DNA of 64,000 nt from Ranitomeya imitator (GCF_032444005.1 NC_091283.1:415648001-415712000); one strand, 5' to 3'. Numbered from the stretch's first letter, positions 26,882-63,909 are shown. Program-made: numbers and translations. The notes: generated by a model not told the origin, from the sequence alone.

Positions 26882-26984
26882 GATAGTATAAGCTTGCTCT
26901 TGGATGCTGTAAGAACCAGGAATGAAGACCTTGCTCAGACTTGGAAGAAATCGGAGCAGTGGGCGACAATCGAGCAGTTGTGCA
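26882..26984 (+). CDS. NPLOC4: NPLOC4 coding exon (DSISLLLDAVRTRNEDLAQTWKKSEQWATIEQLC+S), phase 0/1
   Basis: Bounded by ctttag| and |gtaagt. The 103 nt match NPL4 DSISLLLEAVRTRNEELAQTWKRSEQWATIEQLC. This exon is not in the ORF track. Confidence 0.96.
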
Positions 26985-27716
26985 GTAAGTGCCACAAGAT
27001 AAAATGAGTAACCGCGTTCACACCGAATTCTAAATACGGCGAATTCATGTATCATGTATGCATAGGCTATGCTATAAACTCTGGATGAGAAAGGGGGTTT
27101 GTCTATTTTACCAAAAGAGCCAATCGACATTATTCATTCCCTCCCAATAATTTCTATACACTCCCAATAGGAACTTGACTTGAAATATTCCCGCGACCCT
27201 AGGCCAGCAGCCATGTCAGTAGTACAGATAGGGGGTTCTTGAGCTGTGACCTCCACTAATTTCCAAAATGGTAGATCTCTGCAGATCTGAACTTGGTATA
27301 GTTCTCTTAGTATCTCCAAGGGGCGTATTAAAGGGTAAATCAACCACTATGAACTTGCGGCCATCTATATTGTATAGGTGACACCAGTGGTCTTACAGCA
27401 CCACCCAGTTCTGAGAGGACACGGACTGATGAGAATAGACTGGAGGCTGAGAAGTGATGACAGCAGGAAGTAAAGGAATTTTTTGTGGCTCTGAACAAAA
27501 CGATGAACAAGACAATTGGCGTCGGTACAGATGCTGCGAATATCCGTCACACATTTGTTACTCATTATGTAATGTATTATTAGAGCTCGCATGCTCATGA
27601 TGGCCATCACTGGGACTTAAGGGGCCACACCTGCTTCAAAATATATGCCGGTCTCTATTTCTTATCCATGCATGGGTTTTCCAGTCCTTATGAATAAAAT
27701 AGTCTCTTTCCTTTAG

Positions 27717-27877
27717 GCACGGTTGGGGTGCAACCATCAGAGCTTCAAGATTACGGGGCCATCGGGGGATCCACGCATGCTGCCTCATCAACGTCGATGT
27801 GGTCCTGTCAACACTGCACCTTCATGAACCAGGCTGGGACAGACCAGTGCGAGATGTGCCGCCTGCCCCGGACCTAG
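27717..27877 (+). CDS. NPLOC4: NPLOC4 last coding exon with NZF/RanBP2-type zinc finger and stop codon
   Basis: After ctttag|, the exon reads GC ACG GTT... = (S)TVGVQPSELQDYGAIGGSTHAASSTSMWSCQHCTFMNQAGTDQCEMCRLPRT*. The phase matches the previous exon. Confidence 0.97.
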
Positions 27878-32345: not shown

Positions 32346-34106
32346 TTCACTATCTGATGGGATGGAGTTTGTGCCTGTTGTAAAAATATATAAAAAATTT
32401 CAAGCCCTTTTGGTCCTGGGGACAAATTTTCCCAGCTGAGTTCTTTGGAAACGCCATTGACTTTCGTAGTTCCTAATGGCTAATAACTTTTATACCCATG
32501 CCCACATACTCCCTGGGAGCCAGTGATTCAACTCTTACGCTAGTGCAGTCGTAATGTATAATATTTTATAATAACACAAGACCTCAAATGTTAAAAGGGT
32601 CCTCCAACACTACAATATTAGTCGCCGGTCCTTAGGAAAGTCCCATCAATATCAGGTCGGTAAGTGTTCAACGCAACGTTTAGTACCATTTATTAGAGGG
32701 GTTGTCCAGGCTTGGGGCTCTAGTCTGCAGTCACGCTATGTGAATTCAAACTTTGTTATCTGCACCGTGCGCGATGTCAGGATTCTCCAGCACCAAGAGT
32801 GGGCGGTCATTTGATTTGTATACTTCAGGCCACATGCTGACTAGACGTGTCTGGCCTTGCTCCATTCACTTGTATTGAGCAAGGCCACACACGTCTAGTC
32901 AGCGTGTGATCGCATACTTACCGGCACTGAAGAATCCTGACAGTGTGAACTCTGTGAGGATTCACACATCTGCAGTGAATGCAAACCTGACCCCCAAGCC
33001 TGGAAATTGCCTTAATGTTAGGTAAAAATGTATTTGTTCCCATTTCTCTAAGGTGTCTACCTATTTATCATTCTGTGCAGAAAACGCTATTTTGTGCTGT
33101 TGTTGATCAGTAACCGCAGCATAGTGACCGGTAAACAATAAGCTGTTGCTCCAAGGAGCCTTCAATCAGATGACTGGCAGGTTGTGGACAGTTGGACCCC
33201 CAGGACTAGAAAATCAGAAACTCTGCCATCCACCTACCACTGATTGTAAGTGAATGGAACTGAACTGGGTACTAAAGTACATTTGCTCCAAAAATTAAGA
33301 ACTTTTCAAAATGTCACAATTGAAACATCTGAAAATCTCAAATCCATAATGATAAACATGATAAAAAATTATAAAAGGTGCGAAAAATGCCAAAAACTGG
33401 ATCATAAAAAGTGCAAATGCAATAATGTCTCCGGTACTATTTTTATTTTTTTTAATAATCCCGCAGGAGCCTTTAATTTTACTATCATTACACAATTTGC
33501 AGCTTGTAAACCTCAACAATTCTCTCCACTGCCATAATAGCTTCCTGGCAGGTTACTGGTTAATAAGCCCATTGCTCCATGTTTATCTTCCGTCATACAG
33601 GAATGGTTTCCAGACCCCCAAGTCTCAAATCCCATAAGATTTCATGTAAAGCCGCGCTACCCCCCCCATAGATCTGCCCTTCCTGAGTAAATTATCTGCA
33701 AGGGATATAATGTAGAAATAAAAAAAAAAACCAAGCATTTGTGCATTGATTACATTGAAACGTAAGAAATGTAACCTAGGACATTTATGTTGTCCCCCTC
33801 CTCCTGTGTCAATCAAGGTTGTCTAGGGAAAAATAATAGCGGTCTTCCAAAAACAGCGCCACCCATGCCCACAGGTTGTATGTGGTATTGCAGAACCCAT
33901 TCACTTCCAATGTGCCGAGTATAGCATTCAGGACAGGTATGACATTTTCTACAAGAAAGCTGCCTTGTTTTTCTATAACCCTGGATATTTCTGACCACAT
34001 CGATTCCCAGATTCTGCTCCTAATTATCCCAAACTAGTAAGAGCGAATGGCTGGATCTCCCACAAGAAAGGGAGGGGATATGGAGGAGTCCAAAGTGGGC
34101 GAGGGC

Positions 34107-34112
34107 TATAAA
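34107..34112 (+). promoter_or_regulatory. TATA box of the unnamed secreted-protein gene
   Basis: GGGCTATAAACTGCGCGG lies ~80 nt upstream of a strong donor CAG|GTATGA at 34189/34190. Confidence 0.55.
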
Positions 34113-34134
34113 CTGCGCGGACTGGAGGAAGTCT

Positions 34135-34189
34135 GGAGGGACCAGGACCAGGGAAGGTGGAAGGACACGTGTGGGGAACAACGCAGCAG
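34135..34189 (+). other. Putative non-coding first exon of the unnamed gene (start approximate)
   Basis: Purine-rich segment ~25-30 nt after the TATA box, ending at CAG|GTATGA. It contains no ATG. Confidence 0.45.
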
Positions 34190-35795
34190 GTATGAGCACT
34201 AGATGGAGTTATGCTCCCAGTATGGACTGGCTTTACTCTCCGCAGCGTACTGGGAATCAGCTAAGGAATCCTTCATAACAGAAAAAAAAAGTTACATAAG
34301 AGTCCAGCTGTTTTTCCGATAAAGCATAGTGATGTAGCAGAGCTGAACACTTCATTAATAACCGTTATCACACTCTTAGCTCTGCTACATCTGTAACGTG
34401 GGAATTCTGCGCTGGTTCCCAGTATAGCATGATGTGACTGGAGAATAGAATTTTCTCCTGGTGTTAAGTATTATGTCCTAGTAGTCAGATCCTGTTGGGA
34501 GTCGTGGTGTTTTAGGTATAGATTGTATTTTGGTCATCTTTGGGGTTGTAGTGTTCGATGCATAGAATATTATAGAAATACATTAAGATCATGGTGAGTT
34601 CTCGGGTCCTGTTGGGAGTTGGAGTGTTTGTACGGATTATAATAGAGCTGTATTATGGTCATGTCCAGTGATCAGTACACATTACGGGTTGTAGCAGTCA
34701 ATCTATGCAGTATAATAGAACTACATTATGGTCATGTTGAGTGCTAGTTTTCGATGTACCGAATGTAATAGACTTGTATTATGGTCATGTTGGGGGTTGT
34801 AGTGTTCCCTGAGGAGGCTATAGCAGAATTGTATTAAGGGCATATTGGGGGTGGTAGTATACAATCTATGACCTATAATAGAATTGTATTAAGGTCATAT
34901 TGGGGGTTGTAGTATTCTATAAATTTGCATATTATAATAGTATTTCGCTCTTTTCTAGTGGTTGATCACGTTGGGGGTTGTAGTGTTCCCTGTATAGTTG
35001 GTAAGGATATTGAAGTCATGTCCAGTAGTTGGGCTGCCATTTTTGGAGGCGTTTCTTATGAACCTATACCTCCTGTCATGTGCGGTGGTGGTAACGAGAA
35101 GAACCAGCACAAGCAATGGGCTTCATCTTGTTTTCCATGCTCTGTCCTCCTCTCCTCTATTTACCCCCCGGGTCTTACGTCTTATAGTGTTACATAAGAA
35201 ACATACTAGTCTCATGACTTCATCTTATGTCCTAATTCTTGCCTCCTTAGGTTCTTGGGGAGGTATGTGTCCATCTGTTTATGAGAAATCATTCTGTACA
35301 TAGCGTGACTAGGAAAATGCAGGAAGGAGATTGAGAATGTTCTGAATGCTTTCATCATCCCGAGAACAGATGGGTTTTATCAGTTACGTTTCCCTCTCCA
35401 TCATACTCTCTCCATGCTCTTCAGGATCCACACAGGTGGATCTAGTCCATTCCTACTCAAGACTTTCAATAAAAGGGATAGACAAAAGCTGAAGGACAAC
35501 TATAAGTCCCAGGAAAACTTGACCTGGTTGACCTAGAAGTTGCACAGCTTTCTGAAACTTCACATAGTCATATCCTCCAAGACTCCCACCAGTCGTCTTT
35601 ACCAAGAAGATCTTCAAAAGCCAAGACCACGAATCTGGACACCATACTTTAGTACTTGTTCCAGAAGCGTTATTGGTCTAAGTGGTGAACCCACCATGAC
35701 CAAGTGATGCTCCTTCATCTACACCAAATGGTTTTAGGTCAGTCTACCAAATTATAATAACCTCTATTATTGTCCCTACAGTCTCAGGACCAACC

Positions 35796-35892
35796 ATGGA
35801 GAAGATCTTGCTATGTCTGTTGTTGATCTTCACAATAGGCTTGGCCTCTAAGCAAAAGCGAGAGCCATTAGAGTGGGACTACCGATCAGAAG
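35796..35892 (+). CDS. Unnamed secreted protein, coding exon 1 (MEKILLCLLLIFTIGLASKQKREPLEWDYRSE+A)
   Basis: Acceptor ccctacag| at 35781, Kozak CAACCATGG, hydrophobic signal peptide, and donor G|GTGAGA (phase 1). Confidence 0.88.
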
Positions 35893-37004
35893 GTGAGATG
35901 TGGGACTCCCACAGTGATTAGTGATGATGGGACTGTGGTGGGGGTCAGTCAGCAATGTAGGATGGAACACTCGGTGCTTGTTTTTAATTCATGGAAAATT
36001 GTTTCGGAGAAAGTTATCCCCTATACATAGAATGGGGGACCCCCAGCAATCCTGAGATTGAGGCTCTGCAGTCCAGACTTGAATGAAGCTGAGGTGCCAC
36101 CGCTCGGCCTCCGCTCCATTCATTGTCAATGGGACTGCCAGAAATGGTCGTGTACAGCGCTAGGCTTTCTCCAGCAGACACGTAGACAATGAAAAGTGCT
36201 GATGTCTCAGTTGCTGTTGGATCCCCAGAAATGAATAAATTAATGGAACATCATGACTGATCAGTCGGAGTGCCACGAGTTGGATTAATACAGATATTAT
36301 TAATGGCCTTTTCTGACTAAAAGTACCCATATGAATCCAATATCTGTTGGTTGAATGCTTGTTTAGTTGACAGATGTCCCTCCTGACACTGTGATATACA
36401 CATGAATGATCTGCTGGTCCAAGTGTGAATGTGTTCTTAACAGGGAGAAAGCCACTGCCAGACACTTGGTCGCTTGTGGCAAAAGGGTAGGGCATAAAAA
36501 TTTAACATGCCCAATACTTTCCTCTTTACTGATCTCTTCTGTCAAAGAAGAGTCATGAGGCCCTCATGCACATATGACTGATTGGCCGAAAATGGCAGGT
36601 TGGGCCAACCTCGTTCTTTAGGATAGGTCATTACCCATTCAGCAATTCCCTTATTTACCAGTGACGAGCAGAGACTACAGTCGGCCAGGCGTTTGCCGAG
36701 TACAGTAATTAGGGATCCTCATTTTGGAGGCTGGTAGAGTTCCAGTGATTGGACCACCATAGTGTACCCTAACTATACGGCATGGTGGAAATCCCCCCCT
36801 ACAGACACCACCTTTATAAATGCCCCATTAAGGCATGTTGACCTTTTATACCAGGCGCTCCGCCATGAAGATTTTTGCCAACTGGTGACAGCTACGACCT
36901 CCGTGTACACGTCGTCTACAATGTGATGCAGTCTCGTGTGATGTGGGTTGCTGTTTTTAGTTCTGGGCATAGAACAGAAGTTTCTCACTTCTTTGATTCC
37001 ACAG

Positions 37005-37134
37005 CGGAGAAAGTGAACATGCGAGGGTGCGCTAATCTAACCAATGTGTTGGACAACTGGAAATTTGCCATCCTGACACAGTTCAGAAACCTTCTTTTGT
37101 ATGATCATCACACTGTACTGCCGGACTATGGGAG
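37005..37134 (+). CDS. Unnamed secreted protein, coding exon 2 (EKVNMRGCANLTNVLDNWKFAILTQFRNLLLYDHHTVLPDYG+R)
   Basis: Bounded by ttccacag| and AG|GTGAGA. The 130 nt are phase 1/2, compatible with both neighbouring exons. Confidence 0.88.
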
Positions 37135-37569
37135 GTGAGAATCTCCGAGCCTACAGTTCTTCACGTCTACATCATCCGCTTAGTGTGGAGCTTTGTTTTT
37201 TATTGTGCAGTCCTTTGTCTCTGGCTGGGAGGAAGCTAGCTGTATCAGAAACCACCTTCCATTCCACTAGCTACAATGGAGACTAGAAAGATTATGGTCG
37301 TAGAGATGAGCAAATCTTTTGAAATTCAAATTTGCCAGATTCATCAAGTTTTCCCCCAAAAATATGATTTACCGTAAATTAACTCACTGAAATTTGCGGT
37401 TAGAAGACCTGTAACAGCGAGGTCTCCTATGACTGTAATCAATACTTTTCAAGCTCTTTACTGCAAACTTAAGGATTGCTGAGTGACCTCAACATTTATG
37501 GTTATGAATAAACTTTTGCACTGCAGTCCTGTTTTGCACATTATTTCTAATGTTTATGCAGTGTTTTAA

Positions 37570-38647
37570 CCCCTTAGCGACCGAGCCAATTTTGACCTTA
37601 ATGACCAAGCTCTGGTTATAGAGGTTATAGCTCTGAAATGCTTCAACGGATCCCACTGATTCTGAGATTTTTTTTCGTGACATAGTTTACTTCATGATAG
37701 TGGTACAATTTCTTTGATGTGACTTGCGTTTATTTATGAAAAAAAACCCCTGAAATTTGACAAATTTAGAAAATTTAGCAAGTTTCAAACTTTTAATTTT
37801 TATGCCCTTAAATCTGAGAGTTATATCACACAAAATAGTTAATAAATAACATTTCCCACATGTCGGCACAATTTTGTAAACCAAATTTTTTTTCTTGTTA
37901 GGACATTATAAGGGTTAAAAGTTAACCAGCAATTTCTAATTCTTCCAACATTTACAAAACCATTTTTTTAGGGACCACCTCACATTTGAAGTCCCTTTGA
38001 AGGGTCTATATGACAGAAGATACCCAAAAGTGACACCACTGTAAAAACTGCACCCTTCAAGGTGTGTAAAACCACATTTAAGAAGTTTATTAACCCTTCA
38101 TGTGCTTCACGAGAACTAAAGCAGTGTAGAAGGAAAAAAAGTAACATTCAACTTTTTTCACAAAAAATTTACGTTAGACCCAAACTTTTTTATTTTCACA
38201 AGGGTATCAGGAGAAAATGGACCACAAAATTTGTTGTGCAATTTCTCCTGAGTATGCAGATACCCCGTATGTGGGGGGAAAGCCACTGTTTGGGCACATG
38301 GCAGGGCTCAGAAGGGAGGGAGCACCGTTTGACTTTTTGAATTCAAAATTGGCTGGAATCAATGGCGGGTGTCATGTTTCATTTGGAGACCCCCTGATGT
38401 ACCTAAACAGTGGAAACCCCCCAATTCTAACTCCAACCCTAACACAGCCCTAACACCAACCACAGCCCTAACCCCAAAGAATGGAAAAAAATACATTTTT
38501 TTTATTTTATTATTTTTGCTTAACTAAAGGGGTGACAATGGGGGGGGGGGGTCTGATTTAGGGTTAGAAAAGCATTAAAAAGTGGCGCTGAGGAATAAGA
38601 CCCCTTAACTGCCACCGCTAATAGACGTATCGGTGGTCGTTAAGGGG
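37570..38647 (+). mobile_element. piggyBac-like non-autonomous element (internally deleted relative of the element starting at 60081)
   Basis: TTAA|CCCCTTAGCGACC ... GTCGTTAAGGGG|TTAA. Short CCCTAA-like run at ~38430-38475. Confidence 0.82.
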
Positions 38648-39069
38648 TTAAAGCTTTCTTATCTCGATTGCTAAGTGTTAGAAAAAATGACACTTCCTTA
38701 CTTTTTCAAGTAAGAGCACGGTGAGGATAGAAAGGAAAGCAATATTGAATTGTGGGGATAAAACAACTCTTGTTTAATGTTCGTTCAAAAAATGATTACA
38801 AAAATGAAGAAAAGTAAGTTCATAGCACACAAAATTTAGTATTCTAGAAGAGAAACCAAGCATTCATTGGTCTTACATATGGTCTTGAAGCATGATGTGG
38901 TCTGTGTTGGAGATTCCCAAAGTATGAGAGATCTGACTGAACAGGAGTTGGGTCTGCTTATATACTATTTTCACCCATAGACTTACGGTACATTGGTTTC
39001 TATTTTTCCTATCTCATAACCACATATGGCGATCTGCCGCTATGTTCATAGTCTGTACCATAGTTACTG

Positions 39070-39995
39070 ATGCCGGCCTGCTGTGAGCGCCACCCTGTGG
39101 TCGGCGCTCATAGCAGGCCTGCAATTAAGCTACATAGCAGCGATCTGATGATCGCTGCTATGTAGCAGAGCCGATCGAGTGGTGCCAGCTTCTAGCCTCC
39201 CATAAAGGCTATTGAAGCATGGCAAAAGTAAAAAAAAAATGTTTTTAAAAATATGAAAAAAAAAAAAAAATAAAATAAAAGTTTAAATCGCCCCCCTTTC
39301 GCCCCATCCAAAATAAAATATTAAAAAAAAAATCAAACCTACACATATTTGGTATCACCGCGTTCTGAATCGCCTGATCTATCAATGCAAAAAAAGCATT
39401 AACCTGATCGCTAAACAGCGTAGCGAGAAAAACATTAGAAACGCCAGAATTACGCTTTTTTTGCATTAAAATGCAATAACGGGTGATCAAAAGAACATGT
39501 CTGCACAAAAGTGGCATCATTAAAAATGTCAACTCGGCACGCAAAAAATAAGCCCTCACCCGACCCCAGATCACGAAAAATGGAGACGCTACGGGTATCG
39601 GAAAATAGCGCTTTTTTTTTTTTTCTTTAAAGCAAAGTTTTGAATTTTTTTTACCACTTAGATAAAATATAACCTGGACATGTTTGGTGTCTATGAACTC
39701 GTAATGACCTGGAGAATCATAATATCAGGTCAGTTTTAACATTTAATGAATCTAGCAAAAAAGCCAAGCAAAAAACAAGTGTGGGATTGCACTTTTTTTG
39801 CAATTTCACCACACTTGGAATTTTTTTCCCGTTTTCTAGTACAAGACATGGTAAAACCAATGGTGTCATTCAAAAGTACAACTCGTCCCGCAAAAAATAA
39901 GCCCTCACATGGCCAAATTGACTGAAAAATAAAAAAAGTTATGGCTCTGGGAAGGAGGGGAGCGGAAAACGAAAAAGGGCCATGGCATGAAGGGG
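39070..39995 (+). mobile_element. Partial copy of the 8031-9293 piggyBac-like family
   Basis: Shares GCTGTGAGCGCCACCCTGTGGTCGGCGCTC and downstream sequence. Ends CATGAAGGGG|TTAA. Confidence 0.75.
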
Positions 39996-40209
39996 TTAAA
40001 GAGCCATTTATTATCTCCAAATAGCCACATATTGACAGTTCTGACAAGAGCCCTATAGTTATGACAAACGGAGAACAGATGTATCTAGCAAGATTCTCAA
40101 AATGGCTCAATCGCACACTAACCAGAATCTCTGCTTGCTTGTTAGACTCTGCATGTATTATGTAATCTTCTATATCTTTTATTATTGTTATATTAATATT
40201 TTACACTAA

Positions 40210-40670
40210 GCAGTGATGTCCTCTCACTATCCAGACTCGCTATATAGCTGCTGCATTCCCTGCCTCTGATTTTATACAGGCTATGATAGTCCCTCTTGAT
40301 TGGCTGGGCTATACAGTGTCCTTTCACACACACATCTGTACTGTTTTATTCAGTTTTTCAAAACTCCCTCATCACTATTGCTAAGCTGTGATGTCCTATC
40401 ACTGTCCAGACTCACTATATCGCGGCTGATGCATTCCCTGCCTCTGCTTTAATACAGGCTATGCTTGATTGGTTGGGCTATACAATGTCCTTTCACACAC
40501 ACTATCTGTACTGTCTATTCAGTGTTTTAAAGCTTCCTTATCTCTATTGCTTGTGACATCCTTCCACTATCCAGGCTCGCTATATAACAGCTGCTGCATT
40601 CCCTGCCTATGATTTTATACAGGCTATGATAGGCCTCCTTGTTTGGTTGTGCTATACTATGTGATGTGAT
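40210..40670 (+). repeat. Three diverged ~170-bp tandem copies
   Basis: The block CACTATCCAGACTCGCTATAT...GCATTCCCTGCCT...ATACAGGCTATG recurs at ~40223, ~40400 and ~40566. Confidence 0.75.
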
Positions 40671-41231
40671 GGCTGCTAGGCATTATGGAGAAGCCTGTAC
40701 GGATATACCTAACCTCATCTGAGTCTTCTCTGCCTCATGCAATCTTCTGCTTTGTGTAAAATAGTGTTGGCCATTTTTTGGGGATATTCCAGGAATTGAA
40801 TAACAAATTGTTTGAATTCTTTAGGTTCAGCAAATTTACCCAATATTTGACACCAATCGACTTGCTCATCTCTGTAAGATCTGATCCTTCAGTTAGGCCT
40901 CCACCAAATAAGATAGGCCCCCCAGTTTGACTTCTACCATATTGATTGTTTCAAGCGCTTTCTAAATTGAACATGCCACTAGTAAAGCACCAAAGAGAAC
41001 ACAGTAACCTTTTTGGCTGGGTTTCTCCTTTTAAATGGCTTAAAAATAAATCAAATGTACCAGACCCAGAACCCTGTCCACAGTAGTGCCAGCCAGCCAA
41101 TGCCACTGAGAACCATTCAGAGCAGCCTCAGGGGTCCATGCACTCATAAGTTGGGCGCCTCTACTTTACTTTATGGATTTTGTGAAATTCGTAACCAATA
41201 ATTAATCATTTTGCCCTTCTCTTCCTTTTAG

Positions 41232-41475
41232 AATCAAGTCACTTTCCGAAGCTCTTGACGACTTGTATAAAGAGTTTAACGCTTTGAAGGAACGTCTCGG
41301 AGAGCTCACTACTAAATTTGATGGCGTGGAAGCCTTTGTGGACCAGATGAATGCTGGTCGGCACATGCCCCCTGCCAGGCCACCTTCAGCAGTTGAAGAC
41401 TCGTACTCTGTGCCAAGCCAAAGTGGTCAAACACGAAGAGTGAAAAAAGTTAAAGCACCTGTTAATCGGGTATAA
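41232..41475 (+). CDS. Unnamed secreted protein, last coding exon (IKSLSEALDDLYKEFNALKERLGELTTKFDGVEAFVDQMNAGRHMPPARPPSAVEDSYSVPSQSGQTRRVKKVKAPVNRV*)
   Basis: Polypyrimidine acceptor cttccttttag|A. Phase 2 joins AG+A = Arg. The frame is open to TAA at 41475 and shows a heptad pattern. Confidence 0.88.
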
Positions 41476-41632
41476 AACAAGTGATGGGGGATTGGAATTG
41501 GGAATGGCATGGTGCGATTGCTGTTGAGCTGTGTTTCTCCTTCTCTGCTCCTACCTGACAGTGGCGATGAATACAATGCTTAACAATCATAGTCTTCTGG
41601 ATGTCAGGCAGTGAGCCCCTAGCAGATTTTAA

Positions 41633-42020
41633 AGGGGATCTGTCACTTAAATATGTAACATTTTGTTCCTATCTTGTGTAAATGCCACTGTTCTCCTGAA
41701 TCCGGCATTGTTTCCCTTTTGTTTCTGCGCCTCCATTCCAGGGATATGGCTTCTTCTTCTCAGTAATTAAATCTATGTTTTTATACAAGTAGGTGTGGTC
41801 CTCAAGTAGACTCAATAGAGAAAATTACATCCTCTTAGCAAAAAAAAAAAAAAAGGCAAAAAAAAAACCCCCACAAGATCTTCATACCGGAAAGAAAGGA
41901 TCATATCTCAGGAACGGAGAGATGCAGAGACAAAAAAAAAAAACGTGCCAGATTTGGGAGAACAGCGGCATTTACACCAGGTATAAAAATTACATATTTA
42001 TAAAGAGTGATAGGTCCTCT
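41633..42020. mobile_element. Kolobok/T2-type MITE in the 3' region of the unnamed gene
   Basis: TTAA|AGGGGATCTGTCAC ... GTGATAGGTCCTCT|TTAA. Confidence 0.7.
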
Positions 42021-42454
42021 TTAAAGGAGAATTGACACTGAAATGAGGGCATAGAAGGACCAACAAGGCTTGGTAGGATATAAATCAGGTCTACCCGTGT
42101 CTCTTACTGCCATATTACCCTATGCAGTATTAATATTACCCTATATTACTGCATTTACCTGGATAATGCATATTCTTGTTGTACAATATAATCCTCTGTT
42201 GGGCAAGCCTTCTGTGATTGGGCCACTAGGGAGAGAGGGCGCAGTAGGAGAGTTCATACTGTCTATCTGGGACTCCTGTGTGTTCATTTTCTCTGTAGAG
42301 CGATATATGGAGTGAAGGGTAACCCCCAGCATTGTTTAGAGGACCGATACCTCTAAACAATGTTGAGTGGTCCCCTTTAATTATGACTTCCTGATCAGTG
42401 AGGTCACTTTCTGGTTTTATATTACAAACTCCTGTAACAGGTACACAGTTTTAT

Positions 42455-42460
42455 AATAAA
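42455..42460 (+). terminator. Candidate poly(A) signal of the unnamed gene
   Basis: AATAAA ~1 kb after the stop codon. Confidence 0.35.
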
Positions 42461-42699
42461 TATATTCTACACATGTGTCTGCTGCACTTGAATTTCAAAT
42501 CCGTTTTCATCTACATATTACTTGTCCATGAGTTTCTGCATTTTGACATTCTTCAATTAGTCCTGCTGGAAATATATGGCCCCTAGGGAGAAGGAAGACG
42601 AGTACAGTGTGTTTTTGTAATTTTAAAATAACTTTTAGCTGGGAATATTCATTTACTGAACGGGAACAATCTCTTTAATATAACACCGCCATGTATTGA

Positions 42700-44345
42700 A
42701 CAAAAAATAGAGCCATACTTTGTTCATGTACTGCTGCTACATAGTGAACAAAAAGTAGAGCCATACTGTGTTCATATAATACTTCCACATAGTGATAAAA
42801 TAATAGAGCCATACTTTGTTCATATACTACTGCCACAGTGATCAAGTAATAGAGCCATATTGTGTTCATATACTACTGCCACATAATGATCTAGTAATAG
42901 AGCCATACTGTGTTCATATAATTCTGCCACATAGTGATCAAATAATAGAGCCATACTGTGTTAATATACTACTGCCACATAGTGATCAAGTAATAGAGCC
43001 ATACTGTGTTCATATACTACTGCCACATAGTGATCAAGTAATAGAGCCATACTGTGTTCATATACTACTGCCACATAGTGATCAAATAAGAGCCATACTG
43101 TGTTCATATACTACTGCCACAGTGATCAAGTAATAGAGCCATACTGTGTTCATATACTACTGCCACTTAGTGATCAAATAAGAGCCATACTGTGTTCATA
43201 TACTACTACCACAGTGATCAAGTAATAGAGCCATACTGTGTTCATATACTACTGCCACATAGTGATCAAATAAGAGCCATACTGTGTTCATATACTACTG
43301 CCACAGTGATCAAGTAATAGAGCCATACTGTGTTCATATACTACTGCCACATAGTGATCAAATAAGAGCCATACTGTGTTCATATACTACTACCACAGTG
43401 ATCAAGTAATAGAGCCATACTGTGTTCATATACTACTGCCACATAGTGATCAAATAATAGAGCCATACTGTGTTCATATACTACTGACACATAGTGATCA
43501 AATAACAGCCATACTGTGTTCATATACTACTGCCACAGTGATCAAGTAATAGAGCCATACTGTGTTCATATACTACTGCCACATAGTGATCAAGTAATAG
43601 AGCCATACTGTGTTCATATACTACTGCCACATAGTGATCAAATAAGAGCCATACTGTGTTCATATACTACTGCCACAGTGATCAAGTAATAGAGCCATAC
43701 TGTGTTCATATACTACTACCACATAGTGATCAAATAAGAGCCATACTGTGGTCATATACTACTGCCACAGTGATCAAGTAATAGAGCCATACTGTGTTCA
43801 TATACTACTGCCACATAGTGATCAAATAATAGAGCCATACTGTGTTCATATACTACTGCCACAGTGATCAAGTAAGTCATACTGTGTTTATATACTACTG
43901 CCACAGTGATCAAATAATAGAGCCATACTGTGTTCATATACTACTGCCACACAGTGATCAAGTAATAGAGCTATACTGTGTTCATATAATACTGCCACAG
44001 TGATTAATAGAGCCATACTGTGTTTATATACTACTGCCACATAGTGATCAAATAATAGAGCCATACTGTGTTCATATACTACTGCCACACAGTGATCAAG
44101 TAATAGAGCCATACTGTGTTCATATACTACTGTCACAGTGATCAAGTAATAGAGCCATACTGTGTTCATATACTACTGCCACATAGTGATCAAATAATAG
44201 AGCCATACTGTGTTCATATAATACTGCCACAGTGATCAAGTAATAGAACCATACTGTGTTTATATACTACTGCCACATAGTGATCAAATAATAGAGCCAT
44301 ACTGTGTGCGTATAATATTGCCATGCATTGATCAAATAATAGAAC
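42700..44345 (+). repeat. ~45-48-bp minisatellite, ~35 copies
   Basis: Unit AGAGCCATACTGTGTTCATATACTACTGCCAC(AT)AGTGATCAA(G/A)TA(AT). Confidence 0.93.
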
Positions 44346-44899
44346 CTTACTGTATTAAAGGGGTTTTTCCCTTTCAGTAAATAAATATCACCAGTCCACT
44401 GGGGAGTCTCGTCACTGCTTCCGCTGTCTGGCATTGGCTGTGGCGGTGACGTCGCGTTGACAGCCAATCACTGAGCTGATCAGCTCTGAAGGGAGCACTG
44501 TCTACATGCTACTGAGCTCACTTCCTAGCTGTCGTCAACACCACAGGTAATGCCAGCAACCGGAAGTAATGGCGGAGACTCAGTGCTGGACCTAGGGAAA
44601 GTGAGTACAGTGCTGTTTTTTTTTTAAAGTATAATAACCTACAGTCCGAGACATTCATTTACTGACAGAGAACAACCCTTCCAACATAAGTCACATAATG
44701 ATGGATTTAGAGAACAATGCTATGTTCATATAATACCACCATATACTGATCAAATCATAGAACCATATTGTGCTCACATAATGTCCCGACATGAAAGACA
44801 GGTCAAGTGAATGGTTTATATCTCATGCCAATGGCACCCGAGCAACTGTGACCAGGACCAAATTGTGATGACTGGGTGAGGCTATCTCCAAAACAGCAG

Positions 44900-46620
44900 G
44901 TCTCGTGGGGTGTTCCCGGTATACGGCGGGTCTCGTGTGGTGCTGTCGGTATATGGCAGGTCTCGGGTATTCCCGGTATACGGCAGGTCTCGTGGGGTGT
45001 TATCGGTATACGACGGGTCTTGTGGGGTGTTCCCGGTATACGGCAGGTCTCGTGGGGTGTTATCGGTATACGACGGGTCTCGTGGGGTGTTCCCGGTATA
45101 CGGCAGGTCTCGTGGGGTGTTATCGGTATACGGTGGGTCTCGTGGGGAGTTCCCGGTATATGGCGGGTCTCGAGGGGTGTTGTCAGTATACGGCAGGACT
45201 CGTGGAGAGTTCCCGGTATACGGCAGGTGTCGTGGGGTGTTATCGGTATACGGCAGGTCTCGTGGGGAGTTCCCGGTATATGGCGGGTCTCATAGGGTGT
45301 TATCGGTATACTGCGGGTCTCATGGGGTGTTATCGGTATATGGCGGGGCTCATGGGGTGTTATCGGTATACGGTGGGTCTCGTGGGGAGTTCCCGGTATA
45401 TGGCGGGTCTCGTGCGGTGCTATCGGTATACGGCGGCTCTCGTGGGGAGTTCCCGGTATATGGCGGGTCTCGTGCGGTGCTATCGGTATACGGCGGGTCT
45501 CGTGGGGAGTTCCCGGTATATGGCAGGTCTCGAGGGGTGTTGTCAGTATACGGCAGGTCTCATGGAGAGTTCCCGGTATATGGCGGGTCTCATAGGGTGT
45601 TATCGGTATACTGCGGGTCTCATGGGGAGTTCCCGGTATATGGCAGGTCTCGAGGGGTGACCGTGTTGTCAGTATACGGCAGGTCTCGTGGAGAGTTCCC
45701 GGTATACGGCGGGTCTCGTGGGGAGTTCCCGGTATATGGCAGGTCTCGAGGGGTGACCGTGTTGTCAGTATACGGCAGGTCTCGTGGAGAGTTCCCGGTA
45801 TACGGCAGGTGTCGTGGAGAGTTCCCGGTATACGGCAGGTGTCGTGGAGAGTTCCCGGTATACGGCAGGTGTCGTGGAGAGTTCCCGGTATACGGCGGGT
45901 CTCGTGGGGTGTTATCGGTATACGGCGGGTCTCGTGGGGTGTTATCGGTATACGGCAGGTCTCGTTGGGAGTTCCCGGTATATGGCGGGTCTCATAGGGT
46001 GTTATCGGTATACTGCGGGTCTCATGGGGTGTTATCGGTATATGGCGGGTCTCATGGGGTGTTATCGGTATACGGCAGGTCTCGTGGGGTGTTATCGGTA
46101 TACGGCAGGTCTCGTGGGGTGTTATCGGTATACGGCAGGTCTCGTTGGGAGTTCCCGGTATATGGCGGGTCTCATAGGGTGTTATCGGTATACTGCGGGT
46201 CTCATGGGGTGTTATCGGTATACGGCAGGTCTCGTGGGGTGTTATCGGTATACGGCAGGTCTCGTGGGGTGTTATCGGTATACGGCAGGTCTCGTGGGGT
46301 GTTATCGGTATACGGCAGGTCTCGTTGGGAGTTCCCGGTATATGGCGGGTCTCATAGGGTGTTATCGGTATACTGCGGGTCTCATGGGGTGTTATCGGTA
46401 TACTGCGGGTCTCATGGGGTGTTATCGGTATATGGCGGGTCTCATAGGGTGTTATCGGTATACTGCGGGTCTCATGGGGTGTTATCGGTATATGGCGGGT
46501 CTCGTGCGGTGTTATCGGTATACGGCAGGTCTCGTTGGGAGTTCCCGGTATATGGCAGGTCTCATGGGGTGTTATCGGTATACTGCGGGTCTCATGGGGT
46601 GTTGCCGCTACACGGCAGCT
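44900..46620 (+). repeat. 30-bp minisatellite, ~57 copies
   Basis: Unit CTCGTGGGGTGTT(A/C)(T/C)CGGTATACGGCAGGT. Its length is a multiple of 3, which explains the long repetitive ORFs. Confidence 0.95.
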
Positions 46621-48354: not shown

Positions 48355-51300
48355 ATTACCCTCCCCCTTCGGTGTATAACATCCAGCCCCTCTTCCCCCG
48401 GACCCCCAGTGTATATCCTCCGCCTCCCCCCATGTATACTAAATGGACCCTCCCCCTTCGGTGTATAACATCCAGCCCCTCTTCCCCCAGTGTATATCCT
48501 CCGCCTCCCCCCCATGTATACTAAATGGACCCTCCCCCTTCGGTGTATAACATCCAGCCCTTCTTCCCCCAGTGTATATCCTCCGCCTCCCCCCATGTAT
48601 ACTAAATGGACCCTCCCCCTTCGGTGTATAACATCCAGCCCCTCTTCCCCCAGTGTATATCCTCCGCCTCCCCCCCATGTATACTAAATGGACCCTCCCC
48701 CTTCGGTGTATAACATCCAGCCCCTCTTCCCCCAATGTATATCCTCCGCCTCTCCCCCATGTATACTAAATGGACCCTCCCCCTTCGGTGTATAACATCC
48801 AGCCCCTCTTCCCCCAGTGTATATCCTCCGCCTCCCCCCCATATATACTAAATGGACCCTCCCCCTTCGGTGTATAACATCCAGCCCTTCTTCCCCCAGT
48901 GTATATCCTCCGCCTCCCCCCATGTATACTAAATGGACCCTCCCCCTTCGGTGTATAACATCCAGCCCCTCTTCCCCCAGTGTATATCCTCCGCCTCCCC
49001 CCCATGTATACTAAATGGACCCTCCCCCTTCGGTGTATAACATCCAGCCCCTCTTCCCCCAGTGTATATCCTCCGCCTCTCCCGCATGTATACTAAATGG
49101 ACCCTCCCCCTTCGGTGTATAACATCCAGCCCCTCTTCCCCCAGTGTATATCCTCCGCCTCTCCCCCAAGTATACTAAATGGACCCTCCCCCTTCGGTGT
49201 ATAACATCCAGCCCCTCTTCCCCCAATGTATATCCTCCGCCTCTCCCCCATGTATACTAAATGGACCCTCCCCCTTCGGTGTATAACATCCAGCCCCTCT
49301 TCCCCCAGTGTATATCCTCCGCCTCCCCCCCATGTATACTAAATGGACCCTCCCCCTTCGGTGTATAACATCCAGCCCCTCTTCCCCCAGTGTATATCCT
49401 CCGCCTCCCCACATGTATACTAAATGGACCCTCCCCCTTCGGTGTATAACATCCAGCCCCTCTTCCCCCAGTGTATATCCTCCGCCTCTCCCCCATGTAT
49501 ACTAAATGGACCCTCCCCCTTCGGTGTATAACATCCAGCCCCTCTTCCCCCAGTGTATATCCTCCGCCTCCCCACATGTATACTAAATGGACCCTCCCCC
49601 TTCGGTGTATAACATCCAGCCCCTCTTCCCCCAGTGTATATCCTCCGCCTCCCCCCCATGTATACTAAATGGACCCTCCCCCTTCGGTGTATAACATCCA
49701 GCCCCTCTTCCCCCAGTGTATATCCTCCGCCTCCCCCCCATGTACACTAAATGGACCCTCCCCCTTCGGTGTATAACATCCAGCCCCTCTTCCCCCAGTG
49801 TATATCCTCCGCCTCCCCCCCATGTACACTAAATGGACCCTCCCCCTTCGGTGTATAACATCCAGCCCCTCTTCCCCCAGTGTATATCCTCCGCCTCCCC
49901 CCCCATGTACACTAAATGGACCCTCCCCCTTCGGTGTATAACATCCAGCCCCTCTTCCCCCAGTGTATATCCTCCGCCTCCCCCCATGTACACTAAATGG
50001 ACCCTCCCCCTTCGGTGTATAACATCCAGCCCCTCTTCCCCCAGTGTATATCCTCCGCCTCCCCCCCATGTACACTAAATGGACCCTCCCCCTTCGGTGT
50101 ATAACATCCAGCCCCTCTTCCCCCAGTGTATATCCTCCGCCTCCCCCCCATGTATACTAAATGGACCCTCCCCCTTCGGTGTATAACATCCAGCCCCTCT
50201 TCCCCCAGTGTATATCCTCCGCCTCCCCCCATGTATACTAAATGGACCCTCCCCCTTCAGTGTATAACATCCAGCCCCTCTTCCCCCAGTGTATATCCTC
50301 CGCCTCCCCCCCATGTATACTAAATGGACCCTCCCCCTTCGGTGTATAACATCCAGCCCCTCTTCCCCCAGTGTATATCCTCCGCCTCTCCCCCATGTAT
50401 ACTAAATGGACCCTCCCCCTTCGGTGTATAACATCCAGCCCCTCTTCCCCCAGTGTATATCCTCCGCCTCTCCCCCATGTATACTAAATGGACCCTCCCC
50501 CTTCGGTGTATAACATCCAGCCCCTCTTCCCCCAGTGTATATCCTCCGCCTCCCCCCCATGTATACTAAATGGACCCTCCCCCTTCGGTGTATAACATCC
50601 AGCCCCTCTTCCCCCAGTGTATATCCTCCGCCTCCCCCCATGTATACTAAATGGACCCTCCCCCTTCGGTGTATAACATCCAGCCCCTCTTCCCCCAGTG
50701 TATATCCTCCGCCTCCCCATATGTATACTAAATGGACCCTCCCCCTTCGGTGTATAACATCCAGCCCCTCTTCCCCAAGTGTATATCCTCCGCCTCTCCC
50801 CCATGTATACTAAATGGACCCTCCCCCTTCGGTGTATAACATCCAGTCCCTCTTCCCCCAGTGTATATCCTCCGCCTCCCCCCCCATGTATACTAAATGG
50901 ACCCTCCCTCTTCGGTGTATAACATCCAGCCCCTCTTCCCCCAGTGTATATCCTCCTCCTCTCTCCCATGTATACTAAATGGACCCTCCCCCTTCGGTGT
51001 ATAACATCCAGCCCCTCTTCCCCCAGTGTATATCCTCCGCCTCTCCCCCATGTATACTAAATGGACCCTCCCCCTTCGGTGTATAACATCCAGCCCCTCT
51101 TCCCCCAGTGTATATCCTCCGCCTCTCCCCCAAGTATACTAAATGGACCCTCCCCCTTCGGTGTATAACATCCAGCCCCTCTTCCCCCAATGTATATCCT
51201 CCGCCTCTCCCCCATGTATACTAAATGGACCCTCCCCCTTCGGTGTATAACATCCAGCCCATCTTCCCCCAGTGTATATCCTTCGCCTCCCCCCCCCCCC

Positions 51301-54300
51301 CCCCCATGTATACTAAATGGACCCTCCCCCTTCGGTGTATAACATCCAGCCCCTCTTCCCCCAGTGTATATCCTCCGCCTCCCCACATGTATACTAAATG
51401 GACCCTCCCGCTTGGTGTATAACATCCAGCCCCTCTTCCCCCAGTGTATATCCTCCGCCTCTCCCCCATGTATACTAAATGGACCCTCCCCCTTTGGTGT
51501 ATAACATCCAGCCCCTCTTCCCCCAGTGTATATCCTCCGCCTCCCCCCCATGTATACTAAATGGACCCTCCCCCTTCGGTGTATAACATCCAGCCCCTCT
51601 TCCCCCAGTGTTTATCCTCCGCCTCTCCCCCATGTATACTAAATGGACCCTCCCCCTTCGGTGTATAACATCCAGCCCCTCTTCCCCCAGTGTATATCCT
51701 CCTCCTCTCCCCCATGTATACTAAATGGACCCTCCCCCTTCGGTGTATAACATCCAGCCCCTCTTCCCCCAGTGTATATCCTCCGCCTCCCCCCCCCATG
51801 TATACTAAATGGACCCTCCCCCTTCGGTGTATAACATCCAGCCCCTCTTCCCCCAGTGTATAGCCTCCGCCTCCCCCCCATGTATACTATTTGGACCCTC
51901 CCCCTTCGGTGTATAACATCCAGCCCCTCTTCCCCCAGTGTATATCCTCCGCCTCCCCCCCCCATGTATACTAAATGGACCCTCCCCCTTCGGTGTATAA
52001 CATCCAGCCCCTCTTCCCCCAGTGTATATCCTCCGCCTCCCCCCATGTATACTATTTGGACCCTCACCCTTCGGTGTATAACATCCAGCCCCTCTTCCCC
52101 CAGTGTATATCCTCCGCCTCCCCCCATGTATACTAAATGGACCCTCCCCCTTCGGTGTATAACATCCAGCCCCTCTTCCCCCAGTGTATATCCTCCGCCT
52201 CCCCATATGTATACTAAATGGACCCTCCCCCTTCGGTGTATAACATCCAGCCCCTCTTCCCCCAGTGTATATCCTCCGCCTCTCCCCCATGTATACTAAA
52301 TGGACCCTCCCCCTTCGGTGTATAACATCCAGTCCCTCTTCCCCCAGTGTATATCCTCCGCCTCCCCCCCCATGTATACTAAATGGACCCTCCCTCTTCG
52401 GTGTATAACATCCAGCCCCTCTTCCCCCAGTGTATATCCTCCTCCTCTCCCCCATGTATACTAAATGGACCCTCCCCCTTCGGTGTATAACATCCAGCCC
52501 CTCTTCCCCCAGTGTATATCCTCCGCCTCTCCCCCATGTATACTAAATGGACCCTCCCCCTTCGGTGTATAACATCCAGCCCCTCTTCCCCCAGTGTATA
52601 TCCTCCGCCTCTCCCCCAAGTATACTAAATGGACCCTCCCCCTTCGGTGTATAACATCCAGCCCCTCTTCCCCCAATGTATATCCTCCGCCTCTCCCCCA
52701 TGTATACTAAATGGACCCTCCCCCTTCGGTGTATAACATCCAGCCCATCTTCCCCCAGTGTATATCCTTCGCCTCCCCCCCCCCCCCATGTATACTAAAT
52801 GGACCCTCCCCCTTCGGTGTATAACATCCAGCCCCTCTTCCCCCAGTGTATATCCTCCGCCTCCCCCCCATGTATACTAAATGGACCCTCCCCCTTCGGT
52901 GTATAACATCCAGCCCCTCTTCCCCCAGTGTTTATCCTCCGCCTCTCCCCCATGTATACTAAATGGACCCTCCCCCTTCGGTGTATAACATCCAGCCCCT
53001 CTTCCCCCAGTGTATATCCTCCTCCTCTCCCCCATGTATACTAAATGGACCCTCCCCCTTCGGTGTATAACATCCAGCCCCTCTTCCCCCAGTGTATATC
53101 CTCCGCCTCCCCCCCCCATGTATACTAAATGGACCCTCCCCCTTCGGTGTATAACATCCAGCCCCTCTTCCCCCAGTGTATAGCCTCCGCCTCCCCCCCC
53201 ATGTATACTATTTGGACCCTCCCCCTTCGGTGTATAACATCCAGCCCCTCTTCCCCCAGTGTATATCCTCCGCCTCCCCCCCCATGTATACTAAATGGAC
53301 CCTCCCCCTTTGGTGTATAACATCCAGCCCCTCTTCCCCCAGTGTATATCCTCCGCCTCCCCCCATGTATACTATTTGGACCCTCACCCTTCGGTGTATA
53401 ACATCCAGCCCCTCTTCCCCCAGTGTATATCCTCCGCCTCCCCCCCATGCAGGGTGGATAAAAATCAATGTTTTTTTAAAAAAAAAATCAAAAAAATCGG
53501 ATTTTTTTTATTTAAATCGGATTTTTTTGATTTAAATCGGATTTTTTTGATTTAAATCAGATTTTTTTCAATAAACTGCTTTTTGAGGAAAATATTTTAC
53601 CATCCAAAGGTTCTTCCATCATGAGATAAAGCTGAGTTGTTTAACTCAGTAGAATAAAGGCTGTATATGTGTAACATTCCCAATGCCATGCTATTCCAGA
53701 GGTTTCTGTAGGATTAGTGGGCAGTTTCTCTCCTATATTATCACAGACGCTCGCTTTACTTACGCAGTTCTCAAAACTGAATTTGACTCCGCAGAGGTCC
53801 CAGTCTCTTCTTTAGGGCAAAAATGTTACAACATGAACAGAGTTGAGAAAAAGACCTTAATCCTATTGTTCTAGGATTAAGGAGGAGGAAGGGCAAGCAG
53901 ACAAGAAAATGAAAGTGAAACTTTGAGCACAATACTGCAGCATAGCCACAGACAGACAAGTCTGGATCTGTTTGTGTGTACGATCTGAGGTTTATTACAT
54001 TCTTTCCTTATAATGGCAGCAGGCCGTAAAAGAGACCCAGTTTGGGAATATTTTAATGAAGCTCCTTCGCCTATCGGTAAGGCAGGCATGCGTGCAAAAT
54101 GCAAACGATGCAACAAAGAGATGCAAAGCCTGGTGGCGCGAATGAGGCAACATCATGAGAAGTGCGGTGATGAAGAGGAGTCATCCTCCTCCTCACACTT
54201 AGATTCACATTCTTCTTGTGTTGTGCAGATCTATTCCACTCCAAAAAATCAGAAACATATTGTCTAACTTCTTGGACTTGGCACTGAAAGGGTTGATTCT

Positions 54301-55330
54301 GTATTCATAGGTTTGTAGAACAATAGGATTAAGGTCTTTTTCTCAACTCTGTTCATGTTGTAACATTTTTGCCGTGAAGAAGAGGCTGGGACCTCTGCGG
54401 AGTCAAATTCAGTTAGGTAGAAACTTTGATTTAAATCAAGCCTTACTGACTAGTGATTTAAATCGTGATTTAAATCAGTTAGATTTAAATCAAATCCACC
54501 CTGCCCCCATGTATACTAAATGGACCCTCCCCCTTCAGTGTATAACATCCAGCCCATCTTCCCCCAGTGTATATCCTTCGCCTCCCCCCCCCCCCCCATG
54601 TATACTAAATGGACCCTCCCTCTTCGGTGTATAACATCCAGCCCCTCTTCCCCCAGTGTATATCCTCCTCCTCTCCCCCATGTATACTAAATGGACCGTC
54701 CCCCTTCGGTGTATAACATCCAGCCCCTCTTCCCCCAGTGTATATCCTCCGCCTCCCCCCCATGTATACTAAATGGACCCTCCCCCTTCGGTGTATAACA
54801 TCCAGCCCCTCTTCCCCCAGTGTATATCCTCCGCCTCCCCCCATGTATACTATTTGGACCCTCCCCCTTCGGTGTATAACATCCAGCCCCTCTTCCCCCA
54901 GTGTATATCATCCGGGCCCCTCCACCTCAGCCCCTCTTTCCCCAGTGTATATCCTCCGGGCCCCCCCACCTCAGCCCCTCTTCCCCCAGTGGATATCCTC
55001 CGGGCCCACCCACCTCAGCCCCTCTTCCCCCAGTGTATATCCTCCGGGCCCCCCATCTCAGCCCCTCTTTCCCCAGTGTATATCCTCCTCCTCTCCCCCA
55101 TGTATACTATTTGGACCCTCCCTCCTTCGGTGTATAACGTCCAGACCCTCTTCTCTCTTGTATATACGTCAGGACTCTCACCCCTCCACCCCACCATGTA
55201 TGACCTCCAAGTACTTGGCTCTCAGTGGATAACTTCCGACCCCTCGTCCCCCCCCTGGTGTATAACATCCAGACACTCTCCCCCCCCCCCCCCTCCCCGG
55301 GTGTATAGCATCCAGCTTTTTGTGCCCCTC
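48355..55330 (+). repeat. ~82-bp C-rich satellite (~62 copies before the hAT insertion, resuming after it and decaying at ~54900-55330)
   Basis: Unit CATGTATACTAAATGGACCCTCCCCCTTCGGTGTATAACATCCAGCCCCTCTTCCCCCAGTGTATATCCTCCGCCTCCCCCC. Confidence 0.97.
53450..54503 (+). mobile_element. hAT transposon deletion derivative with a BED zinc-finger remnant, inserted in the satellite
   Basis: TIRs CAGGGTGGAT / ATCCACCCTG and the 8-bp TSD CCCCCATG (53442-53449, 54504-54511). Subterminal GATTTAAATC repeats. ORF 54013-54267 reads MAAGRKRDPVWEYF...AKCKRCNKEMQSLVARMRQHHEKC. Confidence 0.93.
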
Positions 55331-62899: not shown

Positions 62900-63781
62900 T
62901 AGCTCCAACCCTAACCCCAACACACCCCTAACCCTAATCCCAACCTCATCCATAATCCTAATCACTAACCCTAACCATAATCACAACCCTTACCCCAAAA
63001 CAACCCTAATGTCAACCCTAACCATAACCCTAATCAAAACCCTAAATCCAACACACCCCTAATCCTAATCTCAACCCTAACCTCAAACCTAACCCTAATC
63101 CCAATACACCCCTAATCACAACCCTAACCTTAACCCTAATCCCAAACCTAACCCTAATCCCAAGCGTAACCCTAATGCCAACCCTAACCCTAATACCAAC
63201 CCTAATCCAAACCCTAACCCTAATCCCAGCTCTAACCCTAACTTTAGCCCCAACCCTAGCCCTAACTTTAGCCCCAACCCTAACCCTAAGGCTACTTTCA
63301 CACTTGCGTCGTTTGGCATTCCGTCGCAATCCGTCGTTTTGGAAAAGAAACGGATCCTGCAAATGTTCCCGCAGGATGCGTTTTTTGCCCATAGACTTGT
63401 ATTGCCGACGGATCGTGACGGATGGCCACACGTCGCGTCCGTCGTGCACTGGATCAGTTGTGTTTCGGCGGAGCGTCGGCACAAAAAAAGTTCAATGAAA
63501 CGTTTTTTTGTACGTCGCATCCGCCATTTCTGACCGCGCATGCGTGGCCGTAACTCCGCCCCCTCCTCCCCAGGACATAGATTGGGCAGCGGATGTGTTG
63601 AAAAACTACAGCTGCTGCCCACGTTGTGCACAATTTTCACAACGTGCGTCGGTATGTCGGGCCGACGCATTGCGACGGCCCCATACCGACGTAAGTGTGA
63701 AAGAAGCCTAACCCTAAGTTTAGCCCCAACCCTAACCCTAAATTTAGCCCCAACCCTAACCCTAAATTTAGCCCCAACCCT
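62900..63781 (+). repeat. Degenerate (CCCTAA)n telomere-like repeats
   Basis: CCCTAACCCTAATCCC..., TTTAGCCCCAACCCTAACCCTAA variants, running up to the gap. Confidence 0.88.
63290..63708. mobile_element. Harbinger-type MITE inserted in the TAA of a CCCTAA unit
   Basis: TAA|GGCTACTTTCACACTTGCGTCG ... CGACGTAAGTGTGAAAGAAGCC|TAA. Confidence 0.88.
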
Positions 63782-63909
63782 NNNNNNNNNNNNNNNNNNN
63801 NNNNNNNNNNNNNNNNNNNNNNNNNNNNNNNNNNNNNNNNNNNNNNNNNNNNNNNNNNNNNNNNNNNNNNNNNNNNNNNNNNNNNNNNNNNNNNNNNNNN
63901 NNNNNNNNN
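63782..63909. other. Assembly gap (128 N)
   Basis: Run of N. Confidence 1.

Follow-up and report, generated by a model that had tools for sequence, protein, structure and literature searches.

An unnamed, strongly conserved gene beside NPLOC4 encodes a putative secreted coiled-coil protein of non-mammalian jawed vertebrates

Gene structure and expression

The window analyzed in this study is a 64,000-nucleotide stretch of the Ranitomeya imitator genome (GCF_032444005.1, NC_091283.1:415648001-415712000; positions are counted from its first letter), which carries an unnamed gene for a 156-residue protein directly downstream of NPLOC4. According to the sequence and to RNA contigs, this gene consists of four exons on the plus strand, the first of which is non-coding whereas exons 2 to 4 are coding. 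Exon 1 (34118-34189; its 5' limit is 34118 or slightly upstream) is a 5' untranslated region (UTR) without an internal ATG. Exon 2 (35782-35892) encodes residues 1-32 plus one base, and its start codon at position 35796 has A at -3 and G at +4, which makes a good Kozak context. Exon 3 (37005-37134) is 130 nt long and is entered in phase 1 and left in phase 2, and the coding part of exon 4 (41232-41475) ends with the stop codon at 41473-41475. All three exon joints (34189/35782, 35892/37005, and 37134/41232) are of the GT..AG type, the coding introns have the phases 1 and then 2, and the spliced coding sequence (CDS) of 471 nt translates into 156 amino acids. A 3' UTR of approximately 1 kb (41476-42475) is represented by RNA contigs over 41230-41705 and 41875-42475. 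These contigs end at 42446-42475, consistent with an AATAAA motif that a motif scan located at 42455-42460.

A search identified public RNA runs that contain the last exon and the 3' UTR at 65-88% of the sampled words, and the contigs of four runs belonging to three studies were placed on the locus. The two joints between coding exons were found in contigs of all four runs, and the joint between exons 1 and 2 in two of them (X1 and X7). All four exons were traversed without a mismatch by one contig of X1 (754 nt) and by one of X7 (787 nt). RNA depth was zero over positions 33600-34095, immediately 5' of exon 1, and the transcript is therefore independent and not a read-through product of NPLOC4. 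Thus, the locus contains an independently transcribed four-exon gene that is spliced as predicted and expressed, and we regard it as practically certain that this is a real protein-coding gene.

These data bear out most of an initial annotation of the window, which had been made from the sequence alone and had proposed three coding exons with canonical splice sites and matching phases, a Kozak ATG, an upstream non-coding exon, and a downstream AATAAA. The three joints that it had named for a check against RNA were all recovered, and the translation of the spliced CDS matches the predicted product exactly. The proposed upstream TATA box fared less well. A TATAAA motif is present 5' of exon 1 (34107-34112, plus strand), but its role as a canonical start-setting box is doubtful because the most upstream RNA contigs begin at 34118 and 34125, which is too near to the motif.

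Within intron 3, positions 37660-40150 contain repeat families with a summed RNA contig depth of up to ~95,000 (X7) and many internal joints. We read this signal as expressed interspersed repeats that lie outside the gene proper.

Family membership and database status

A cluster look-up showed that the window product is identical at 156 of 156 positions to XP_077109497.1 (P0233), which is listed as "uncharacterized protein LOC143766035" of Ranitomeya variabilis. Hence, the gene is already modelled in RefSeq and is unnamed rather than unannotated. The novelty claimed for it initially holds only in part: the gene has no name, but RefSeq contains an identical model, and its orthologues, which number in the hundreds, are deposited as uncharacterized proteins or under zebrafish clone names. 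In the entry for Ranitomeya imitator itself, a spurious N-terminal extension of 140 amino acids precedes these 156 residues.

The 80-residue peptide of exon 4 was compared exhaustively with 1.84 billion representatives by phmmer, and this search yielded 93 matches, most of which were 80-270 amino acids long and aligned at the same relative position. The long tetratricopeptide repeat (TPR) proteins that topped this search (P0001, P0007, and others) were dismissed as false positives caused by the summing of coiled-coil and TPR repeats. Word-indexed searches retrieved 196 proteins with a shark query, 385 with a frog query, and 337 with a gar query. All matches that carried a name were called 'uncharacterized' or 'hypothetical', except for a few mislabelled entries. 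Three public records (P0133, P0209, P0232) contain annotation errors, one of which is the name of the Labeo rohita orthologue, 'Nuclear localization 4 like', taken from the adjacent NPLOC4.

Members of the family were found in sharks, chimaera, coelacanth, bichir, sturgeon, gar, bowfin, and teleosts as well as in frogs, salamanders, turtles, squamates, and birds. The corresponding Ensembl names in fish are si:ch73-127m5.3, si:dkey-282h22.5, and si:ch211-76l23.4, and the Xenopus laevis gene is LOC108700980. The window product is 87% identical to the Leptodactylus orthologue, 67% to that of Xenopus, and ~73% over the core region to those of sharks; full-length E-values against orthologues from frogs to sharks ranged from 1e-107 to 1e-55.

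No Pfam family was matched by the exon peptides, by four full-length members, or by the 63 aligned members, and the sub-threshold matches were limited to the generic coiled-coil entries DUF7310, DUF5798, and Spc7. No paper was retrieved when the full text of the literature was searched for six LOC identifiers and for the clone names of the three zebrafish genes with their prefixes, and a literature search on PLAC9, a small protein considered further below, gave nothing relevant. In agreement with the initial failure to recognise any named protein, these searches thus connected the product with no characterised family, domain, structure, or publication. The family is catalogued but uncharacterised, and as biology it is an orphan.

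Synteny, paralogues and absence from mammals

In tblastn searches with NPLOC4 exon peptides from penguin, gar, and catfish, the two final coding exons of this gene mapped to 26906-26989 and 27716-27874 (plus strand), and earlier ones to 1441-1545, 7627-7743, and 9841-9981. The gene under study starts at ~34118 on the same strand, leaving a gap of about 6 kb after the end of the last NPLOC4 coding exon at 27874, and the predicted position directly downstream of NPLOC4 is thus correct. The order in the penguin is NPLOC4, this gene, and FAAP100, all on one strand, which is the arrangement that the initial annotation had suggested to look for. In gar and catfish the order is NPLOC4, this gene, and RNF213. 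Neither FAAP100 nor RNF213 had a match with E < 0.01 downstream of the gene in the window. In the genes reconstructed from Leptodactylus, penguin, gar, and catfish, the number of coding exons was always three, the middle one was exactly 130 nt long, and the phases were 1 and 2. The gene has been inherited vertically, with fixed synteny and exon phases.

In a maximum-likelihood tree of the core region, the window protein grouped with Leptodactylus inside the frogs, and the tetrapod sequences followed the species tree. A Cys-less paralogue B (si:ch211-76l23.4) formed a clade with 100/100 support, and faster-evolving groups restricted to teleosts (C) formed clades of their own. Zebrafish has three paralogues, compared with a single gene in Xenopus. 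Among the best 120 of 337 matches, paralogue B came from ray-finned fishes and coelacanth and never from a tetrapod. The bird branch was long, at 0.91 changes per site, and a change of constraint seems to have occurred in this group. The C-terminal basic cluster described below is largely lost from the bird orthologues (P0205, P0220, P0225; L001, L004).

Two further observations concern individual lineages. A tail segment of ~10-12 residues, of the type T-L-x-L-x-P-G-I-L-x-N-Q, is present in other frogs (P0104, P0129, P0121, P0144; near 41400-41440 in window coordinates) and absent from the window protein, Anomaloglossus, and Leptodactylus, which points to a lineage-specific indel in a fast-evolving tail. 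In addition, a 3.3-kb contig (L005:1-900; Logan SRR31175736; P0076) contains a complete and unusually divergent member with very short introns, which shares ~55% identity with the window protein in exon 3 (44 residues) and 63% in exon 4 (43 residues).

Homologues were obtained only from non-mammalian jawed vertebrates and always beside NPLOC4, as the initial annotation had surmised for a family of non-mammalian vertebrates. Apart from the TPR false positives, each of the 93 representatives from the exhaustive search, when compared with the named proteins, was most similar to one from fish, amphibians, reptiles, or birds. The sequence labelled 'Mustela putorius furo' in nr is shared with a tilapia entry and was read as contamination. 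Two divergent matches were examined as possible mammalian members. P0026 is encoded on a GC-rich contig where NPLOC4 exons just upstream match the penguin locus in several frames, and is most likely avian; P0076 is the complete divergent gene described above. To our knowledge, no gene lies between NPLOC4 and FAAP100 in human. The protein searches, in which no match list contained a mammalian protein, support the suggested loss in mammals, or a divergence past recognition; the absence is not proven, because mammalian genome DNA lay outside these searches.

Protein features and selective constraint

The N-terminus of the protein varies in sequence, as is usual for signal peptides, but keeps a common character: a hydrophobic stretch is followed by small residues and then by basic residues. 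In 62 of 63 members, an 11-residue N-terminal window reached a mean Kyte-Doolittle value of at least 2.0. In the window protein, this region corresponds to a putative signal peptide of approximately residues 1-17 (35796-35846), followed by K-Q-K-R. Exon 3 encodes a single cysteine, Cys41 (codon at 37028-37030), and the sequon N43-L-T45 (37034-37042). A single Cys in the mature part is found in 56 of the 63 members, and the seven members without it all belong to paralogue B. The C-terminal tail is rich in proline, predicted to be disordered, and ends in the basic cluster R-R-V-K-K-V-K (41434-41454); 48 of the 63 members have a basic cluster in this tail.

AlphaFold2 (AF2) models of the full-length protein, computed from the family alignment, comprised a signal helix, two helices at residues 29-69 and 80-118, and the disordered tail, and a core-only model placed the helices at residues 38-74 and 78-119. 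Helix 1 and the invariant L-P-D-Y-G-R loop are encoded in exon 3, and the L-P-D-Y-G-R-I turn joins the two predicted helices, for which the predicted local distance difference test (pLDDT) reached up to 95. The heptad coiled-coil helix (residues 77-115, 41233-41349) is encoded in exon 4. All members have hydrophobic residues at its a/d positions 77, 80, 84, 87, 91, 94, 98, 101, 105, 108, 112, and 115, and this unbroken 3-4 spacing corresponds to 5.5 heptads. Conserved additional hydrophobic residues at 83, 88, and 111 broaden the stripe. Structure searches with Foldseek (Swiss-Prot AFDB, PDB, and AFDB clusters) and a shape search of the ESM Atlas returned only the protein's own family and generic helical hairpins.

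Two alignments of 63 (A1) and 52 (A2) sequences, which cover all three paralogue groups, contained 24 invariant columns and 15-16 more with at least 90% conservation. All 24 invariant columns of A2 are present in the window protein, and A1 gives the same set. They include the N-L-T sequon, an L-D-N-W motif, the L-P-D-Y-x-R-I turn, and the Leu/Phe ladder of the heptads. Neither N43 nor T45 varies in any of the 63 and 52 aligned sequences. Many polar residues that would face outward are invariant as well (D49, N50, D66, H67, D73, R76, S81, K95, E109, and D113).

The ratio of non-synonymous to synonymous substitution rates (dN/dS; Nei-Gojobori method, window CDS versus Leptodactylus) was 0.117 for the whole CDS. 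It was 0.029 for the core (residues 25-120), where 4 non-synonymous and 26 synonymous changes were counted, and 0.39 for the tail. Purifying selection on the core is thus very strong according to this dN/dS analysis, which had been suggested with the initial prediction.

Other features of the window

An NPLOC4 intron contains a retrotransposon (13999-17974, plus strand) with open reading frames (ORFs) for reverse transcriptase and RNase H and a weak match to tyrosine recombinases (phage integrase), and this gene content suggests a DIRS-like element. Downstream of the gene, tandem arrays occupy positions 42697-44353, 44899-46603, 48403-53449, 54592-55088, and 60721-62848. The first three consist of 48/92-bp units (x35/18), 30-bp units (x56), and 82-bp units (x61, 96% identity), respectively; the 30-bp array creates a spurious ORF of 594 amino acids. 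The region 54592-55088 comprises a 4-copy 82-bp array (54592-54914) and a 44-bp x4.7 array (54884-55088), and the last array has 388-bp units (x5.4). A degenerate telomere-like (CCCTAA)n stretch is found at 62905-63289, inside the chromosome sequence and close to a run of 128 N (63782-63909).

Possible function of the protein

Taken together, the sequence features point to a glycosylated, signal-bearing, two-helix coiled-coil protein that acts as an extracellular ligand or adaptor, a picture to which we assign a probability of about 0.6. A cleaved N-terminal signal peptide would direct the protein into the secretory pathway, a placement based on this signal together with the invariant sequon; the same two features agree with the secreted-type product proposed in the initial annotation. 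The invariance of N43-L-T45 is hard to explain unless the sequon is glycosylated, which would entail entry into the endoplasmic reticulum (ER). The predicted mature protein of ~14 kDa would consist of two long amphipathic helices (approximately residues 38-74 and 78-119) joined by the L-P-D-Y-G-R-I turn. Because of the heptad ladder and the lone cysteine, we argue for an oligomer: the 5.5 canonical heptads of the second helix probably mediate a coiled-coil or helical-bundle assembly, and Cys41 probably links a dimer by a disulfide in the Cys-bearing paralogues. The basic cluster of the proline-rich tail resembles a heparin-binding motif and may serve to anchor the protein on heparan sulfate or at the cell surface. 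Since a plain coiled coil requires only its a/d positions, the invariant polar residues that would face outward suggest binding of a conserved partner, and the protein would then serve as an extracellular ligand or adaptor and not as a mere structural rod.

Three observations weigh against this picture. The AF2 monomer models had low predicted template modelling (pTM) scores of 0.29 and 0.40, which leave the helix packing and the oligomeric state undefined, although such scores are as expected for a chain that would need partners to pack. In paralogue B, Cys41 is replaced by Val, and a disulfide is therefore not essential to the fold. Finally, the basic cluster is absent from birds and some fishes.

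The feature combination also invites other explanations. Signal and sequon would also suit a luminal resident of the ER or Golgi or a signal-anchor membrane protein, for example an assembly or cargo factor, and FIBIN, which has been reported largely in the ER and Golgi, is a weak language-model neighbour of the family. However, the protein has neither a KDEL-like C-terminus nor a retention motif, its tail is basic and of the extracellular-matrix type, and the hydrophobic stretch spans only ~13-14 residues before the small residues that are typical of a cleaved signal. We thus consider a resident or anchored protein unlikely. The small size, the signal peptide, and the basic sites at both ends of the mature protein, including the tail cluster in most members, would also be compatible with a prohormone or neuropeptide precursor, in which convertases cut at K-Q-K-R and at the C-terminal cluster to free small peptides and the helical core is only a carrier. 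The pattern of constraint is the reverse of what such a precursor would display: the helical core of 95 residues is nearly invariant, whereas the segments that would be released, namely the tail and the variable N-terminal stretch, are the least conserved. In addition, the N-terminal dibasic site is missing from the chimaera and catfish orthologues and a glycine amidation signal is not conserved, which makes a precursor function quite improbable.

A distant relationship to a known family of small secreted coiled-coil proteins, with PLAC9 as the nearest and with mammals keeping the function in a diverged paralogue, was considered because the first language-model neighbours beyond the family's own clusters were PLAC9 clusters (0.73 and 0.71), followed by SMIM23, the noelin N-terminal module, and FIBIN. 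These scores are well below the threshold of 0.9 for a lead, no member matched PF15205, PF15819, or PF12308 at E-values up to 10, and the exhaustive phmmer, Foldseek, and shape searches yielded no such proteins; we regard this relationship as very unlikely. The explanation that the locus is merely transcribed and contains a chance ORF in place of a functional protein-coding gene is refuted, as the core dN/dS, the conservation from sharks to birds, the fixed intron phases and synteny, and the spliced mRNA all contradict it.

Returning to the extracellular coiled-coil protein, a more specific and less probable version is that of an orphan signalling ligand of jawed vertebrates, which would be a glycosylated, disulfide-linked dimer with a matrix-binding tail and a receptor of its own and would have been lost in mammals. 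Such a ligand would have remained almost unchanged from sharks to reptiles while evolving fast in birds. If this proposal were true, a hormone- or cytokine-like system would have stayed hidden from mammalian model organisms, and an undiscovered receptor pathway would exist in fish, amphibians, and reptiles. Work on mouse and human has not touched the family because no mammalian member was found. If mammals did lose the gene, the time of its loss from the NPLOC4-FAAP100 interval could be determined and may coincide with a physiological change. It is rare for a small secreted protein to be so conserved and yet lack a name, a domain, a structure, and a paper, although many comparable 'LOC' genes exist. 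As the gene itself was already in RefSeq, the new contributions of this study are its verification, the definition of the family, and a testable mechanism.

Comparison with known proteins

A profile search of the PDB retrieved the neck repeats of DC-SIGNR/CLEC4M (3jqh) with a summed E-value of 1e-6 over five repeats and otherwise noise. The tetramerising 23-residue neck repeat resembles the motif L-x-x-L-Y-x-E-F-x-x-L-K-x-x-L-G-E-L of the window protein. However, the latter has one heptad helix and lacks a lectin domain (according to Pfam), a repeat array, and a transmembrane anchor. Kinship with DC-SIGN/DC-SIGNR was rejected since the E-values of single repeats (i-Evalue 11-230) were insignificant, and we read the similarity as a convergent heptad pattern. 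When only exon 4 was used for a feature search of the ESM Atlas, phage proteins scored 0.8, which was dismissed as noise.

The N-terminal module of noelin/olfactomedin (PF12308), FIBIN (PF15819), and the fibrinogen chains (PF08702) resemble the window protein in that they are extracellular, carry Cys beside a heptad helix, and form covalent oligomers. They were weak language-model neighbours (0.57-0.64), and none had a sequence or fold match. With the exception of FIBIN, these modules sit on large globular domains, whereas the window protein consists of a coiled coil and a basic tail. Among named proteins, PLAC9 (PF15205) comes nearest in language-model feature space, and like the window protein it is small, has a signal peptide, and folds into a helical body of coiled-coil type. 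This indicates resemblance and not homology: PLAC9 differs in its length of ~95 amino acids, and the family, represented by 63 members and the exon peptides, has no hidden Markov model match to it at E-values up to 10 and no fold match.

Closest to the window gene are its own relatives. The paralogue si:ch211-76l23.4 is 55-65% identical and shares the architecture, the heptad helix, and the invariant residues including the N-L-T sequon, while differing in the Val that replaces Cys41 and in its location at another locus (gar L006). The orthologue group of LOC143766035 and si:ch73-127m5.3, whose entries are all automatic models, does not differ from the window gene. It agrees with it in sequence, synteny, exon structure, and invariant residues, and it is the same gene.

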